Assembly (NCBI RefSeq): GCF_036321535.1
Contig: NC_087447.1
Location: forward strand, 248,001 to 312,000
Reading direction: 5' to 3'
Origin: Camelus dromedarius
Lineage: Eukaryota
Length of the DNA: 64,000 nt
The notes under the pieces are model-generated. The model saw only the letters and a list, made by a program, of their open reading frames with translations. It made no database searches and was not told where the DNA came from. Positions 1 through 62,451 of the stretch are shown here, one piece after another (positions within the stretch are counted from its first letter, which is position 1; each line of letters opens with the position of its first letter). The translations under genes were made by a program, and so were the position numbers.

Positions 1-851
1 GTCGGCCCTGCTCCGCTGCTTCTGCCGCCGGGTCTCCTTGTACCTCAGGGTGATGTCCCTGGTGGCAGCGGGGGCCGCGTCACCACCAGCTGGGCCCTGG
101 AGGTCCCTGCCACTGCCCCGCGGACGCGCCCCCGCGGGTGCCAGCGCGGGCAGGGCAGAGCCGAGCCGCGCAGGGCCTGGCGCCTCGGACCCGACCGGGG
201 AGAGGCCCGGAGGCGCAGGGCCGTGGCGTGCGGGCTCACCGCAGGAAGAAGCGCCAGACGGTCCAGGTGAGGGCGAGCACGGAGCCGAGCGTCCAGCACT
301 GCGAGATGTAGAAGGGCAGGGACAGCGTGAGCGTCTGCGGGTCATACTTGACCACGATGAGCAGCTCCGTGACCGTGATGGCCGCCACCAGCCAGGCCTG
401 CTGGCCCAGCTTCTTGTGGGGCTTCCTGCAGGGGAGGCGTCGGCTGAGGGCGTGCAGGCCAGCTCGGCCCGAGGGGCAGCACCGGCTCCCCCCGTGCCTC
501 CCCGGCCCCCGTGGCCCTCACGGGTCGTCCATGAAGTCGTAGATCTCCCGCATGGCCACGCCGCCCACGTTGACGAAGAAGACCAGCCGCAGGAGGACCA
601 GGCAGTGCTCGGGGGGCAGCCACAGCACGAACTTCAGGTAGAACGTGTTCAGTTCTGCCAACAAAAACTGGGGGCAGAGGAGGGTGGGGGTGAGCCCGGT
701 GCCCGGGGGCCGCGCGCGGGAGGCCGCCAGCCTTACCACCAGGACGATGCCGCACACGGCCAGCCAGCGGCGCAGACTGGACGCGGGCTTCCACTCGAAG
801 CGCACCCAGCTGTAGGGCGTGAACTGGAAGGCGATCCTCTTCATCTTGCCC
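1..851 (-). CDS. PTDSS2: Phosphatidylserine synthase 2, last four coding exons (about exons 9-12); last exon truncated by the window edge
   Basis: Exons 737-851, 522-667, 240-425 and <1-58, all GT-AG and in frame. They translate to [38 protein letters not shown] / [49 protein letters not shown] / [62 protein letters not shown] / [13 protein letters not shown], the recognisable PTDSS2 C-terminal half. Confidence 0.93.
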
Positions 852-1017
852 CTAGAACCAGGGCTGTCACCTGGGGCGGCACCGCCCCCGCCCCGCCCCG
901 CCCCCAGGCCTCTTCCTGGGCCACTTCCCCCAGGGAGGGCGGCCAGGGCGGGGTGGTCCGGAGAAGGGCCGGCAGGGACGCCGAGGCCCCGTGGGGCAGG
1001 GTGGCTCCTGGGACGTA

Positions 1018-1149
1018 NNNNNNNNNNNNNNNNNNNNNNNNNNNNNNNNNNNNNNNNNNNNNNNNNNNNNNNNNNNNNNNNNNNNNNNNNNNNNNNNNNN
1101 NNNNNNNNNNNNNNNNNNNNNNNNNNNNNNNNNNNNNNNNNNNNNNNNN
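1018..1149. other. Assembly gap (132 N)
   Basis: Run of N. The expected preceding PTDSS2 exon is not found on the far side of the gap. Confidence 0.99.
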
Positions 1150-1719
1150 GCCGGGGGAGGTGGGTGCCACAGACCCCACCCCATCCTGTCCGGGGCCACC
1201 ACTCCGCCTCCCGGGCCCATGGGAGAGCCAGTCCCCGCCCTACATGCGAGGCCTCAAATAGAAAGTTTAAAACACTGATATCAAAAAAAGCAGCCATATG
1301 CATGCCCAAGATGTCACCGTGCCTCGTGGGTAGAGACTTCTGTGGGCATCAGGCCACCCTCCTCCCAGGTCTCGGTCAGCCAGCCAGCCCTTTGGGCCAC
1401 AGCATGGGAGTCCTCAGGGAAAGATGTTGGAAAGCTAGGGACACCCAGCCCTGGTGTTGTTCCAGCAAAAGTGATGGCAAGTCCAGGGGTGACCAAGATG
1501 GTGAGGGCAGAGGGCTGCTCGGGTGCCACTGGGAGAGGACTGCAGGGAGCGCGAATCCCTCTCAGAAGACTGAAGGTGAACTACCGGGAACAGATCCCCT
1601 CTTCGTACCTGGGCAGGAAGTGGCCCAGGCCAAGCCAGGGGACCCTCAGGGGCTCTACCAAATCCCCCATGCCACCACCAGCACTCAGGGCACATTTCTC
1701 TACACACACAAACTTCTGG

Positions 1720-1810
1720 AAACTTCGTTAGCCTGCAGAACCTGTTTCCCCATCCGTAAAATGGGGACAATCGCAGCTCAGCTATGGGAACCCTGGTAGG
1801 ATTAAGGCCA
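1720..1810 (+). mobile_element. MIR SINE core fragment
   Basis: CCTGTTTCCCCATCCGTAAAATGGGGACAAT resembles the MIR core (..CTCAGTTTCCTCATCTGTAAAATGGGGATAAT..). Confidence 0.55.
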
Positions 1811-4284
1811 GAACCTAAGCAAAGCCTTGAGCACCCTGCCTGCACCACGAAGCCCGTGAGTGGTGACTGGTGCGTCCCTGGGGCCCCAGCACAGTCCTCC
1901 TGGGGGAGGAAGCATTAGCTTTCACATCTCGAGTGACAAGGAACTCAGCACTTCTCCCCGCCTTCCCTGCATCTGGGGGCCACCATGGGGGACCAGCCGC
2001 TGCCTCCTAGCCAGTCCGCTCTCAATCACTTCATTCTCCTCACAGAGGCTGACGTCCTTTGAAACACAAATCTGGCATGTCACTCCCCTACTGAAGCACC
2101 CCACACTGGTCCCCCACCCTCTTCCACGTCCCCATCCACTCATGCGCTCCAGCTGCCCTGCTCCCTTTTGGGTCCTCTCTGGGGCCTCTGCAAGGCTCCT
2201 CTCTCTGCCCCAGAGGAGTAAGAGGTCCTGGAGGCTCCTGGCAGCCCGGCCAGCCCAACAGCACCACTGCATGTCGGCTGCTGTGTCTGAGTCCCACCCG
2301 ACCCTAGAAGAGCTCCCGCGAGAAGCTGCGTCTGTCTCGGTCACACAGCTGGCCCAGAGCAGCACCAGCGCCTGGGAAGAGCTCAGAACCACAAGCGGTG
2401 GACGGATGGGCTGAGGTGCAGGCAGCGGATTGGGCGAGGGGGAGCTGTATCCCTCCATGACCTTCCCTACTGAAGGTGCACGACGCGGGGTGGGCGGCGC
2501 GTGGGGGATGCCTGGCCCCAGGCGTCCGCCCCGGGAGCCGGGGGATCAGGGGCGGTGCCGTGGTGCAAGTCCAGGAAGGCTCAATGGAGGAGGTTGGCCC
2601 TGGGCTGCACTTGGCGGGAGACAAGCCCTCAGGACTTTGGAAGGTTCGCCAGCGTGGGCGCAAGTTTGCCAACAGGAAGCGCCAGGACGCGCAGGGCTGG
2701 AGTAGCAAGACCGGCGCCTCCTGGGTCTCCGCGAGCGAGCGCGCTGCACCCCTACACCTAGCACGTCAACTCGTTCTGATCTGCCCCCACCCCTGCAGGC
2801 TGGGTGGCCCCGGGCAATCTACTTAGGTTCTCTGTACTCCAGCGCGCTCCTGAATTTTGTTTTATTTTCCTGCTTACATTTTCAAGCTTTTCTCCAGGTC
2901 CTCTGGTGCCTAATAGCCGTCCTCCAGCCTCTGAAAGGAAGTGGGGTGGGGTGCCCTCTTGATACCCCTCAGGCTCCGCCTGCAGATGCCTGGCAGCCCC
3001 TCACACCTGCTGAGTGCCCCTTGGCAGTGAGTGGCCCCCAGGTTACCAAAGTCAGCATCAGGGGTCCTCCTTCCATCCTGCCTCCTGCTCTGTCCCTCAG
3101 CCCTGAGAGCCATCCCGTCCACCACCTGCTGCTTACCCCCAGCTCCTCCTTCAGAAACTTCTGTAACAACTGCCCGGGGTCCCCACCTCCGGTAGATGCC
3201 TCAGCCCAGTCTCTAAGCCTGGTCACTTGGAGGGGTGTAAATGCTAACCTCCCCTCTTGGGCCCCCATAGCCTTTCCTTCTGCCTTCCCAGGGCAGAGTC
3301 CAGGCTCCCCCCTTCCACCCACCTCCCAAGGAGGAGCATCACTCACCTTTCCAGGCCCTCAGGTTCCAGGTTCTCAAAACTTGACAGTGCACCAAAGCAG
3401 ATCCCCAGGCCCTGCGCACACAGACGGACCTACCGCTTGTTTTCTAAGCTCCCTGGGTGAGTCTTCCTCCATCTGCCAGGGATACCCCTCCTCCAGAAAG
3501 TCCACCATCAAGCCGGGTACTGAATCCCCCTTGTGCTGTCTCCCCATGCACGGGCTCAAGGGAGAAGAGGACTCTCGTGGAGGAAGGAGCAGGAGGCTGG
3601 TCGCAGGGGTCGGACTGGGCTCTGAGCTTAAGGTGGGGACCTGTCCGAGCCATAGCAGGCCCCTCAGGCCCTGCAGCAGTTAGAGAAAGCTCCTGAGCTC
3701 TAGAGCACACTGAGCCACCAAGGCCGGAGATCGGAGGTGGGAGGGTCTACGTGTCCTCAGGGAGGCTTCTCACAGCCGGGGGCACCCGTAGCCTCTCCTG
3801 CCAAGAGTCCTCAGAACCAGCCCTGGGGACCCTGCAGGCTGTTGAAAACCAGGCCACGGGGTACCTGCCTGGTGCTTCCTCTCCCTCCCGTGGCTCCAAC
3901 CCCACCAAAGCCCATTCCATCCCTCTGCGGCTCCGTCCTTCCACCCGGGGCCTCTGCACAAGTCCCCTCCAGTCCCCACCTGCAGTCTGCCCTTCAAGGC
4001 TGGCTTCCTGGTCATGCAGCCCAGCCTGGCCTCCGCAGGCCCCAGGAGGCCCCGGGTGGACTCCGTGTGAAGGGCGGGTCCTGGCCCATGCCAGGCGTGC
4101 ACCTTCAGGCACACTCAGCACCGCACAAACTTGTCTCCCGGGATTTTTCCACACAAAACATGTCTCCCTGGGAAGCAACCGGTCTGATGAGCTGGCGGGG
4201 TGTGCGGGCGTTCCCACTCCTCCCTCCCAGGGCCCCCACAGTCCCATCCCACACCGAGGCCCCAGCAGCTGTGCTGGGCCCGGG

Positions 4285-4371
4285 ATGGAGCCCAGGACTC
4301 CTGGACCTCGACCGGCAGCAGTGGCCTCTGGGATGAGCCCCAGGGCCGGCGGTATCCGGACCACCAGCGGG
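4285..4371 (+). CDS. PKP3: Plakophilin-3 alternative first coding exon 1b (PKP3b isoform)
   Basis: GGGATGG start, 29 codons MEPRTPGPRPAAVASGMSPRAGGIRTTSG, then a GTAGGT donor at 4372 in phase 0. Resembles the human PKP3b N-terminus as I recall it (MESWTPRPSAVASGMSWEAGGIRTTSR). A matching in-frame acceptor (CTGCAG|CCC) lies inside exon 1a at 5932/5933. Confidence 0.75.
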
Positions 4372-47734: not shown

Positions 47735-48229
47735 GAAAATACATATATGTATATTAATAACAGCTTTGTCGCGGTATAATTCACATACCATACAATTTAC
47801 GGATTTAGAGTGTGCAGCTCAGTAGTATTTAGTATATTCATAGACACATACAACCATCATCACAGTCAATTTTAGAATATTTTCATGGCCCTGCAAAGAA
47901 ACCCAGTACCCTTTGGCAGTCACTCCCCATTCCCTTCCGAGCCTGTGGGGACCACTAATGTCTCCATGATTTGCCAATTCTGGACATTTCACATAAGTTG
48001 ATCNNNNNNNNNNNNNNNNNNNNNNNNNNNNNNNNNNNNNNNNNNNNNNNNNNNNNNNNNNNNNNNNNNNNNNNNNNNNNNNNNNNNNNNNNNNNNNNNN
48101 NNNNNNNNNNNNNNNNNNNNNNNNNNNNNNNNNNNGCGGATATACCACATTCTGTGCATGCATTTGTCAGTCGGTGGACATTAGGTTGCCTCCCCTTTTG
48201 GCTATTATGAATTATGATGCTATGAACAT
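47735..48229 (-). mobile_element. L1MB-like 3' end, left part (interrupted by the provirus)
   Basis: AACAGCTTTGTCGCGGTATAATTCACATACCATACAATTTAC..ATATTTTCATGGCCCTGCAAAGAAACCCAGTACCC..GGACATTTCAC..GGATATACCACATT..GCTATGAACAT matches the antisense L1MB 3' consensus. Confidence 0.85.
48004..48135. other. Assembly gap (132 N) inside the L1MB element
   Basis: Run of N; the L1 sequence is collinear on both sides. Confidence 0.99.
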
Positions 48230-54869: not shown

Positions 54870-55620
54870 GAGACACACCTGAGTCTGGCGGGTCAGGAAA
54901 GGCCTGGGCGGGAGGGCCTGGGGCGGGGCTCGCGCAAGCTGCCCGGCTAGAGGAGGGTCTGGGCAGCCCTGCGCTGGGTACTGAGAGACGCCGCGCCTCC
55001 CGCCCACGCGCTGGTTACCTAGCAACCAGGCAGCATCCCTCCCAGCAAGCACCGCTTCGAACGCAAGACACTGGAGACTACGAGTCCCTGCATGCCCCGC
55101 GGCCCGGGCGCGCGGACTACAAGTCCCACAACGCATCGCCTGTCCTCTCCTGGCCGCCCCCCGCCCCTGCGCTCCCGAGACCCTGCGGAGCGAGCGCGCG
55201 ACCCCTTCCCGACGCTCCCCGCGCCGAGTGCGGCGCGGTCTCGCGGTGACTCGGGAGCGTGGGGGCGAGGCCCGGAGGAGCGGCTGGGCCGGGGCGCCAT
55301 GCGGCGGTGCGAGCGCGGCGGCGCCGAGGGGCAGCGGCCGGGGTCCCCCGTGCCCGTGGGCAAGGCCTCGCTGGAGGAGCCGCCGGACGGCGCGCCCGCG
55401 GGCCGAGCGGGCGGGCCGGGCGCGGGCCGCCGCAGCAACGAGTCCGAGGTCTACGACGACGGCACCAACACCTTCTTCTGGTGAGGGACGCGGTTCGCTC
55501 CGCTGCCGGGATGAGGGGTGCCCGCGGGACGCGGGGCGGCCCAGCGCCTCCTGTGCGCGCTGCCCCAGAGGGAGGGCTGGAGGTGAGGGGGGCAGGGAAC
55601 TCGACTCGCGGTCTACAGAA
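54870..55620 (+). promoter_or_regulatory. PTDSS2 CpG-island promoter with ZNF143/THAP11-type motifs
   Basis: CpG-dense. GC box GGGGCGGGGC at about 54921; TCCCAGCAAGCAC at about 55040; ACTACGAGTCCC at 55077; ACTACAAGTCCCA at 55116. Confidence 0.8.
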
Positions 55621-61600: not shown

Positions 61601-62292
61601 CAGCTGTTGAAATGGAGAGGGGCCCAGGCGAGGGTGTGACTCAGGCAGTGTGCAGGCTGGTACTTGGCGCTTGTGGGCCCTGTTTCCAGGTGAGGCCCGC
61701 CCACTGGCTGCTGAGAGCCAGCCTCCTTCCTCCCACATCAGGGCTCTGAAAGCTAATACGGAAGGGGCCAGACAGAGGTGAGGAGCCTGCCCTCGCTCCA
61801 GCCACGCAGCCGTCTCTCAGCCAGGTCTCCTGGGTGTTCAGCAGCAGTCTGCCCGCCCGTCTTGCTTGGGGCCTCAGAGCCCCTCTCTGCCTCCTGTCCT
61901 CCACTGTCCTTGCGGTCTCCCATATGTGCTCATTTCATGCACCAGAGGTCGGTCTCAGCCCGGCCTTACTCCGTGAATAGAGCTGTGTTAACCTGCTGCC
62001 TGGTCTCTCCTACAAGAGATGCCAGCTCCAGGCACCTGGGGCGTGCTGGCGTGATGGACAGACTGGACAGGGTGACACAGCACACGCAGAGTGTGTAGCT
62101 CATGGTCAGTGAGCTCCCTCCCCTGGTGGCATGTCATGAGTGTGGGGTGGTGCTTTCTGGACCTGATGTGGCCATGTGCTTGCCTTTCAGGCGGGCCCAC
62201 ACCCTGACGGTGCTTTTCATCCTCACCTGTGTGCTGGGCTACGTGACTCTGCTGGAGGAGACGCCACGGGACACGGCCTACAACACCAAGAG
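55299..62292 (+). CDS. PTDSS2: Phosphatidylserine synthase 2, coding exons 1-2 (gene continues beyond the window)
   Basis: Exon 1 CDS 55299-55480 (GCCATGC; [49 protein letters not shown], donor GTGAGG) and exon 2 62191-62292 ([34 protein letters not shown], donor GTACCG); in frame. Confidence 0.96.
58350..59230 (-). mobile_element. Highly decayed, GC-shifted L1ME-like remnant in PTDSS2 intron 1
   Basis: CATAGCCACACCTGCTTGTCTT and TTCCTGAAGGGTATTTTTGCTGGATGTGGGACCCTGGTT correspond to the antisense L1ME anchors ATAGCCACTCCAGCTTTCTT and TTGAAGGATATTTTCGCTGGATATAGAATTCTGGGTT. Confidence 0.5.
60430..60680 (+). mobile_element. Ancient L1 ORF2 remnant
   Basis: GGAGATGTTCCTTGTCTTGTGGATGGGGAACTC..CAATTCTTCCC..TTATAAATTCAGTGCAATTCTAATTAGAATCC is the decayed IPCSWIGR..ILPKLIYRFNAIPIKIP segment. 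Confidence 0.75.
60745..61395 (-). mobile_element. Ancient L1M 3' region
   Basis: TTGGCCATTTGTTTACCTTTTCCTTTGAAGTGTGTGTGCAGTCTTTTGTCC..GTTGTAAGAGTTCTTTATGTTTCTGGATACAGAGGCCTTTGTCAGA matches the antisense L1 ORF2 3' end. Confidence 0.7.
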
Positions 62293-62451
62293 GTACCGGG
62301 CTGCCGGAGGTTGGGTGGGGTACTCACTCCCTCAGGCTGGCCAGGGGTCTGGGGACCAGCCTCCACTGCATGCCCGGAGCATCCTGCCCGTCCCTGGGGC
62401 CCCACCAGCACATCTCCCATGTGATCTGCAGGTCATGCTGCATTTGCACAT

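Follow-up and report, generated by a model that had tools for sequence, protein, structure and literature searches.

The PTDSS2 exons that lie on the minus strand at the left end of the dromedary DNA analysed here very probably mark the inner end of a real and old inverted segmental duplication, which carries PTDSS2 exons 8–12 together with RNH1. The DNA analysed (64,000 nt, hereafter the window, in whose coordinates positions are given unless a locus is named) is 100% identical to positions 248,001–312,000 of the dromedary record CM070321.1 (assembly GCA_036321535.1). Two loci of this record were used for comparison: L001, which bears the partial copy of PTDSS2, and L002, which bears the full gene. 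Camelids would thereby have a second coding region for the ribonuclease inhibitor RNH1 and a headless copy of PTDSS2. Camel PTDSS2 itself is neither broken nor misassembled, which removes a false alarm raised by the initial annotation of the window.

A partial copy of PTDSS2 on the minus strand

The initial annotation recognised four intron-separated 3′ exons of PTDSS2 on the minus strand, and this part of it held. The exons (exons 9–12 of the gene; Table 1) are bounded by AG/GT signals and their phases are mutually consistent. In a Pfam search the first three matched the PSS family (PF03034) at profile positions 160–272 of 273, and the encoded residues match camelid PTDSS2 proteins at 100% identity, as compared with 88–91% for other mammals. 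Over window 1–1017 (without 233–274), five substitutions and two one-nt indels separate the partial copy from the full gene, the sole exonic difference being a synonymous CTG/TTG change at position 637, in exon 10 (C in the fragment and T in the full gene). Intron 8 of the partial copy contains, at ~895–915, a GC-rich repeat of the GGGGC type whose copy number differs among species and arms; that of the dromedary is 10–15 nt shorter than those of the other camelids.

These exons had been thought to end at a 132-N gap. The run of N found at that point is, however, a mask over real letters: in L001 exactly 132 letters, with no N among them, separate two flanks that are identical to the window (window 11131–1150 corresponds to L001:1–9982, at 100.000%, and window 1017–1 to L001:10115–11131, at 100%). 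Since the record has letters there, the run masks continuous sequence; the junction contains no assembly gap in CM070321.1, i.e. it is not an unread stretch between two contigs. A second run of N in the window is also a mask (Table 1). Exon 8, which was invisible in the initial annotation, lies under the first mask to judge by coordinates; a 240-aa dromedary product (P0212, of the same cluster as the C. ferus model P0001 described below) is annotated from L001:10001, which corresponds to window 1131.

These observations bear directly on the reading initially preferred, in which a contig block starting at 1150 would have been misoriented during scaffolding at an assembly gap, cutting PTDSS2 in two. 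The N run does sit exactly at the apparent break in the gene, and flipping the block would set exons 1–2 on the same strand as exons 9–12. The record is nevertheless N-free at this point, the plus strand carries a complete PTDSS2 that extends beyond the window, and the junction recurs in the assemblies of four species and in independent short-read data (see below). A scaffolding error is accordingly rejected as highly improbable.

Table 1. Coordinates of the features discussed (window positions;., no strand)
Feature	Position	Strand	Basis or remarks
Exon 12 start, partial copy	58-1	-	AG acceptor 60-59; in frame with exon 11; cut by the window's left end; no difference from the C-terminus of camelid PTDSS2
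Exon 11, partial copy (186 nt)	425-240	-	AG/GT; PSS profile 248-272; 100% to P0001
Exon 10, partial copy (146 nt)	667-522	-	AG/GT; Pfam PSS, E = 7.8e-13
Exon 9, partial copy (115 nt)	851-737	-	AG/GT; Pfam PSS, E = 3.1e-07
N run, partial copy	1018-1149	.	Mask over 132 real letters; exon 8 predicted beneath
Exon 8, partial copy	about 1019-1137	-	Predicted from product start and exon length (coordinates only)
Inner duplication edge, intron 7	~1176-1193 within 1150-1193	-	Alignment starts at L001:9939 = window 1193
Upstream exon N2	2878-2931	-	P0001 residues 38-55, 100%; acceptor TTTCAG|, donor |GTAAGC; C. ferus and C. bactrianus models
Upstream exon N1	3348-3413	-	P0001 residues 16-37, 95%; acceptor GCGCAG|, donor |GTGAGT; C. 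ferus and C. bactrianus models
First coding exons of PTDSS2-like models	3485-3915 zone; C. bactrianus ~3508, C. ferus ~3915	-	L006/L008 mapped onto the window; approximate
Second N run	48004-48135	.	Mask; L002:2913-3044 has 132 letters and no N, flanks 100% identical
Exon 1, full PTDSS2	55092-55481	+	P0236 residues 1-130, 100%; annotated start at record 303,092
Exon 2, full PTDSS2	62186-62293	+	tblastn of P0236 on L002

The full PTDSS2 gene lies on the plus strand

The longest dromedary PTDSS2 isoform (P0236, 556 aa) is annotated at 303,092–327,478 of the record, on the plus strand. A tblastn search with this protein placed all 12 exons in order on that strand, from 55,092 to window-equivalent 79,475. 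Exons 1–2 are within the window, as had been noted, while exons 3–12 occupy window-equivalents 68,178–79,475, some 4–15.5 kb past its right end. The search thus yielded a second, plus-strand copy of exons 9–12 downstream of 64 kb, the finding that the initial annotation had named as the sign of a duplication. The claim that PTDSS2 is split does not stand: the gene is whole because exons 1–7 run on into the exons 8–12 of the other arm of the duplication, past the right end of the window. Intron 7 of the full gene is 156 nt long. Downstream of the gene, at a distance of 1,887 nt and on the opposite strand, is an RNH1-like gene (527 aa; LRR_RI_capping).

A second reading of the window, a real inversion with a breakpoint inside PTDSS2 that would have inactivated the gene in camels, starts from the position of the 3′ exons, which are inverted and lie some 54 kb 5′ of exon 1. 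Against it stands the full-length, 12-exon gene beside the fragment, as do the full-length products (479–579 aa) annotated beside the fragment in all four camelids compared (dromedary, Camelus ferus, C. bactrianus and alpaca, Vicugna pacos). An inversion of this kind, also raised initially, is thereby excluded.

An unplaced contig of the same assembly (L003, JAZARU010000114.1 in GCA_036321535.1; 37,293 bp) contains PTDSS2 in full once more, together with a portion of RNH1. It is 99.992% identical to the full-gene arm of the chromosome (two mismatches, one gap) and is a redundant leftover contig, which shows that the region was not cleanly resolved by the assembler. Its presence is the reason why dromedary PTDSS2 proteins appear under two NCBI accession series.

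Arms, inner edge and contents of the duplication

Alignment of the two loci showed L001:9939–21236 and L002:33088–44383 to be 99.673% identical over 11,306 nt (19 mismatches, 6 gaps). This alignment reaches the ends of the DNA fetched, so that the arms are at least 11.3 kb long. They are opposed in orientation, lie on the same chromosome ~77 kb apart (from 249,193 to 326,179 of the record), and have a defined inner edge. An inverted partial duplicate, the third-ranked possibility in the initial annotation, is therefore what these loci contain.

The inner edge falls in intron 7 (Table 1). When the two copies were read side by side at the edge, the visible part of intron 7 was found to be identical only for its final ~27–44 nt. 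The copy retains the last ~56 nt of the intron, and exon 8 thereby keeps its acceptor. The partial copy is flanked by PKP3 on its near side and by an RNH1-like gene (527 aa) on its far side, the latter again at a spacing of 1,887 nt, as in the full arm. The two RNH1-like genes, one per arm, are at L001:13123–21236 and L002:36274–44387, outside the window. In each of the four species, the annotation gives both genes a product of 527 aa (the loci of the other species being L004/L005 in alpaca, L006/L007 in C. ferus and L008/L009 in C. bactrianus).

Between the arms, the spacer contains a PKP3-like gene with Arm repeats on the plus strand and an ANO9-like gene of the Anoctamin family on the minus strand. 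SIGIRR, stated to be present in the initial annotation, was not confirmed by Pfam in the twelve minus-strand ORFs at 16.8–22.3 kb.

The same arrangement in other camelids and in independent reads

Comparison of gene order with other camelid assemblies, one of the checks initially proposed, gave the same layout (RNH1, exons 12–8, PKP3 ... full PTDSS2, RNH1) in C. ferus (GCA_009834535.1), C. bactrianus (GCA_048773025.1) and V. pacos (GCA_048564905.1). The arrangement is thus not private to a single assembly, but is seen in four assemblies of four species. The partial-copy loci of dromedary and alpaca are collinear across the junction, with 95.7% identity over 21 kb. The inner edge of the alpaca duplication (L004:10112 and L005:32863) coincides with that of the dromedary within 7 nt; camel and alpaca therefore have the same breakpoint, as expected of a single old event.

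Independent reads were assessed by the share of 31-mers found, rather than by spanning reads, in window 1150–4200, which spans the edge of the duplication: run X6 (from 2017, of a sample and a study different from those of the assembly) contained all of the sampled 31-mers (305/305), and run X10, from organism B, 97% of them.

The second arm might still be an assembly artefact, such as an uncollapsed haplotype or a graph tangle, in animals that have a single copy. The close similarity of the arms (99.7–99.96% identity) could be taken to indicate this, as could the redundant unplaced contig that covers the full-gene arm. Yet a haplotype copy could not give rise to the unique junction between the region upstream of PKP3 and intron 7; this junction is kept in alpaca at 95.7% identity and with the same edge, is found in the annotations of both C. 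ferus and C. bactrianus, and its k-mers are present in independent runs. In addition, a few arm-specific variants (at window ~167, ~134 and ~119) are common to C. ferus and C. bactrianus. A false duplication is quite improbable on these grounds, and a true one remains the preferred reading.

The arms evolve in concert

The divergence between arms was expressed as substitutions over 9.9 kb of their RNH1 part. Within species, it was 0.010% in alpaca (one substitution in 9.9 kb), 0.091% in dromedary, 0.172% in C. ferus and 0.262% in C. bactrianus, while any camel arm differed from any alpaca arm by 2.6%. Paralogues within a species are thus closer than orthologues between species. In the tree obtained, the two dromedary arms were paired (support 0.996), as were the two alpaca arms (1.0). 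Both dromedary arms carry 11–13 derived substitutions in common, and four derived substitutions occur on every arm of C. ferus and C. bactrianus; 15–17 sites are fixed on both arms of a lineage. In the PTDSS2 part, too, nearly all camel-alpaca differences are common to both arms of a species, the variants at window ~167, ~134 and ~119 being among the few that are specific to an arm. All of this is explained by one duplication that preceded the split of camels and alpaca, with gene conversion between the arms continuing thereafter. Conversion from the working copy, and not selection on the fragment, is the likely cause of the perfect reading frame of the latter; we infer that arm-to-arm conversion could have kept this frame intact over millions of years with no need for selection on the fragment.

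Some sites show a mixed pattern. At window 887 and 883, the full-gene arm of the dromedary has the alpaca state (T and A, respectively), while the dromedary fragment and the four C. ferus and C. bactrianus arms have G and G; the change apparently arose on one arm and spread to the other in one lineage only. In the RNH1 part, the full-gene arm of C. ferus is nearest to the partial-copy arm of C. bactrianus (12 differences, versus 21–23); the two are also paired in the tree and have three derived sites in common (L001-equivalents 16368, 18999 and 19971). Near the 3′ end of PTDSS2, by contrast, each arm goes with its positional counterpart in the other species. Arms may have exchanged sequence in the past, the sites being too few to call it.

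Product and possible transcription of the headless copy

Human PSS2 is a homodimer of subunits with 10 transmembrane segments, in which His200 is catalytic and Glu225, Glu228, Glu240 and Asp249 are the Ca2+ ligands (PMC12107096). In the 487-aa camel isoform, whose exon 8 starts at W246, each of these positions has a one-to-one counterpart. The fragment encoded by exons 8–12 belongs to the PSS family (PF03034) and to PTDSS2 by sequence match, and its catalytic site is incomplete: of the five residues it keeps only Asp249, lacking His200, Glu225, Glu228 and Glu240 as well as the N-terminal ~45% of the domain. The product of the plus-strand gene (P0243) has all five. Because four of the five catalytic-site residues are absent, the fragment cannot form an active phosphatidylserine synthase.

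The fragment is present in NCBI as 'phosphatidylserine synthase 2-like' in C. ferus (XP_032346299), C. bactrianus (XP_074229078), dromedary (XP_064347979) and alpaca (XP_072826766). A search with the exon-11 peptide retrieved P0001, a 297-aa 'PTDSS2-like' model of C. ferus that comprises exons 8–12 and two small upstream exons; in the models of both C. ferus and C. bactrianus these exons, N1 and N2, which have consensus splice sites (Table 1), are spliced to exon 8. The start of the C. ferus model and that of the 815-aa form of PKP3 (~4285) are about 370 nt apart, in a head-to-head arrangement. In window 3915–4285, the starts on opposite strands fit a bidirectional promoter at an alternative first exon of PKP3. 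The gene models suggest that the fragment may be transcribed, through N1 and N2, from a promoter region shared with PKP3. In RNA runs, the k-mer share of 2878–3413 was 0.08 and 0.29, reaching 0.59 in runs guessed to be RNA, as compared with ~0.12 expected from the exons alone. These shares are compatible with unspliced RNA or with DNA carry-over, and are ambiguous as to expression of the fragment.

Orientation of the block between the arms

The nearby end of the chromosome, 220–260 kb away, provides a reference for the orientation of the ~77-kb block. Read from it, the three Camelus assemblies have the order arm, fragment, PKP3 ... PTDSS2, arm, while the alpaca assembly has arm, PTDSS2 ... PKP3, fragment, arm; that is, the block is reversed relative to Camelus. 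Exchange between the arms may have truly inverted the block, or the difference may stem from a choice made in assembly. As a flip of the block makes no new junction, sequence junctions cannot settle its orientation. PTDSS2 is whole in either case. The initial proposal of a flip holds only to this extent.

The block might, then, be wrongly oriented in at least one assembly, or its orientation might be polymorphic, the duplication itself being real; this would be compatible with the explanation favoured here. Reads that do not span a whole arm cannot anchor the block, given how alike the arms are; those of alpaca differ by a single substitution in 9.9 kb, and the alpaca orientation is opposite to that of the three Camelus assemblies. 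On the other hand, these three assemblies are independent and agree with one another and with the human order, in which PKP3 is, by established knowledge, distal to PTDSS2, and the dromedary arms, with about one difference per 450 nt, can be phased by accurate long reads. Overall, a wrong or polymorphic orientation is possible but not what we would expect. For assemblers, the orientation of this 77-kb block calls for long-range data.

A more speculative extension of the duplication model, offered tentatively and judged rather unlikely as a whole, is that the arms act as a hinge: the block would be truly inverted between alpaca and camels, and perhaps still be polymorphic, with either arm supplying exons 8–12 to PTDSS2, while the headless copy would be transcribed from the head-to-head promoter of PKP3 to give a C-terminal PSS2 fragment of 240–297 aa that could pair with the homodimeric full-length PSS2.

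A model for the origin of the arrangement

In the proposed sequence of events, a block consisting of PTDSS2 exons 8–12 and the whole coding part of RNH1 would have been copied in reverse orientation. The copied block would begin ~56 nt before exon 8, within the 156-nt intron 7, and the copy would have been inserted about 3 kb upstream of PKP3. The outcome would be a pair of inverted arms, each 11.3 kb or longer, around a block of ~77 kb that contains PKP3, the ANO9-like gene and PTDSS2 exons 1–7. Gene conversion would have held the arms near identical since before the camel/alpaca split. At most, transcription starting in the promoter region head-to-head with PKP3 may run through two new exons into the fragment, a step that relies on gene models.

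Comparison with known systems

In kind, the arrangement is an unremarkable if neat inverted segmental duplication, visible in NCBI as the 'PTDSS2-like' models; a literature search found no paper describing an inverted duplication of PTDSS2/RNH1 in camelids. The NCBI models comprise exons 8–12, with or without the two upstream exons (3413–3348 and 2931–2878). The annotation calls them genes or isoforms and is silent on their being the truncated arm of an inverted duplication; for annotators, 'PTDSS2-like' would be better labelled a truncated duplicate.

The established gene order at human 11p15.5, B4GALNT4-PKP3-SIGIRR-ANO9-PTDSS2-RNH1-HRAS, agrees with the camel order PKP3 ... ANO9-like ... PTDSS2-RNH1, also as regards strands. 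Camelids differ in having an extra, inverted block of RNH1 and PTDSS2 exons 8–12 just distal to PKP3, where the human chromosome has sequence of the B4GALNT4 side; that the duplicate is lacking in human is read solely from the established gene order.

Gene conversion between the arms of large palindromes, such as those of the primate Y chromosome, was reportedly described by Rozen et al. in 2003. The camelid locus resembles these palindromes in that the identity of the arms within a species (99.7–99.99%) is far above that between species, and in that lineage-specific substitutions are found on both arms. It differs from them in being autosomal and subtelomeric, in showing no amplification of testis genes, and in having a spacer (77 kb) that far exceeds the arms in length, as far as these are known (at least 11.3 kb).

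Another parallel is the FLNA-EMD region at human Xq28, where, by the accounts attributed to Small et al. 1997 and Caceres et al. 2007, a block of ~48 kb is said to lie between inverted repeats of ~11 kb that are >99% identical, and to have been inverted recurrently in eutherians. In both systems, a block of tens of kb with genes in it is flanked by two long inverted arms that are almost identical; the arms are homogenised by mutual exchange, and the orientation of the block apparently differs between lineages. They differ in that the orientations of the camelid block are known only from the comparison of camel and alpaca assemblies, and in that the edge of the camelid arm cuts intron 7 of PTDSS2, so that one arm completes the gene while the other is left headless.
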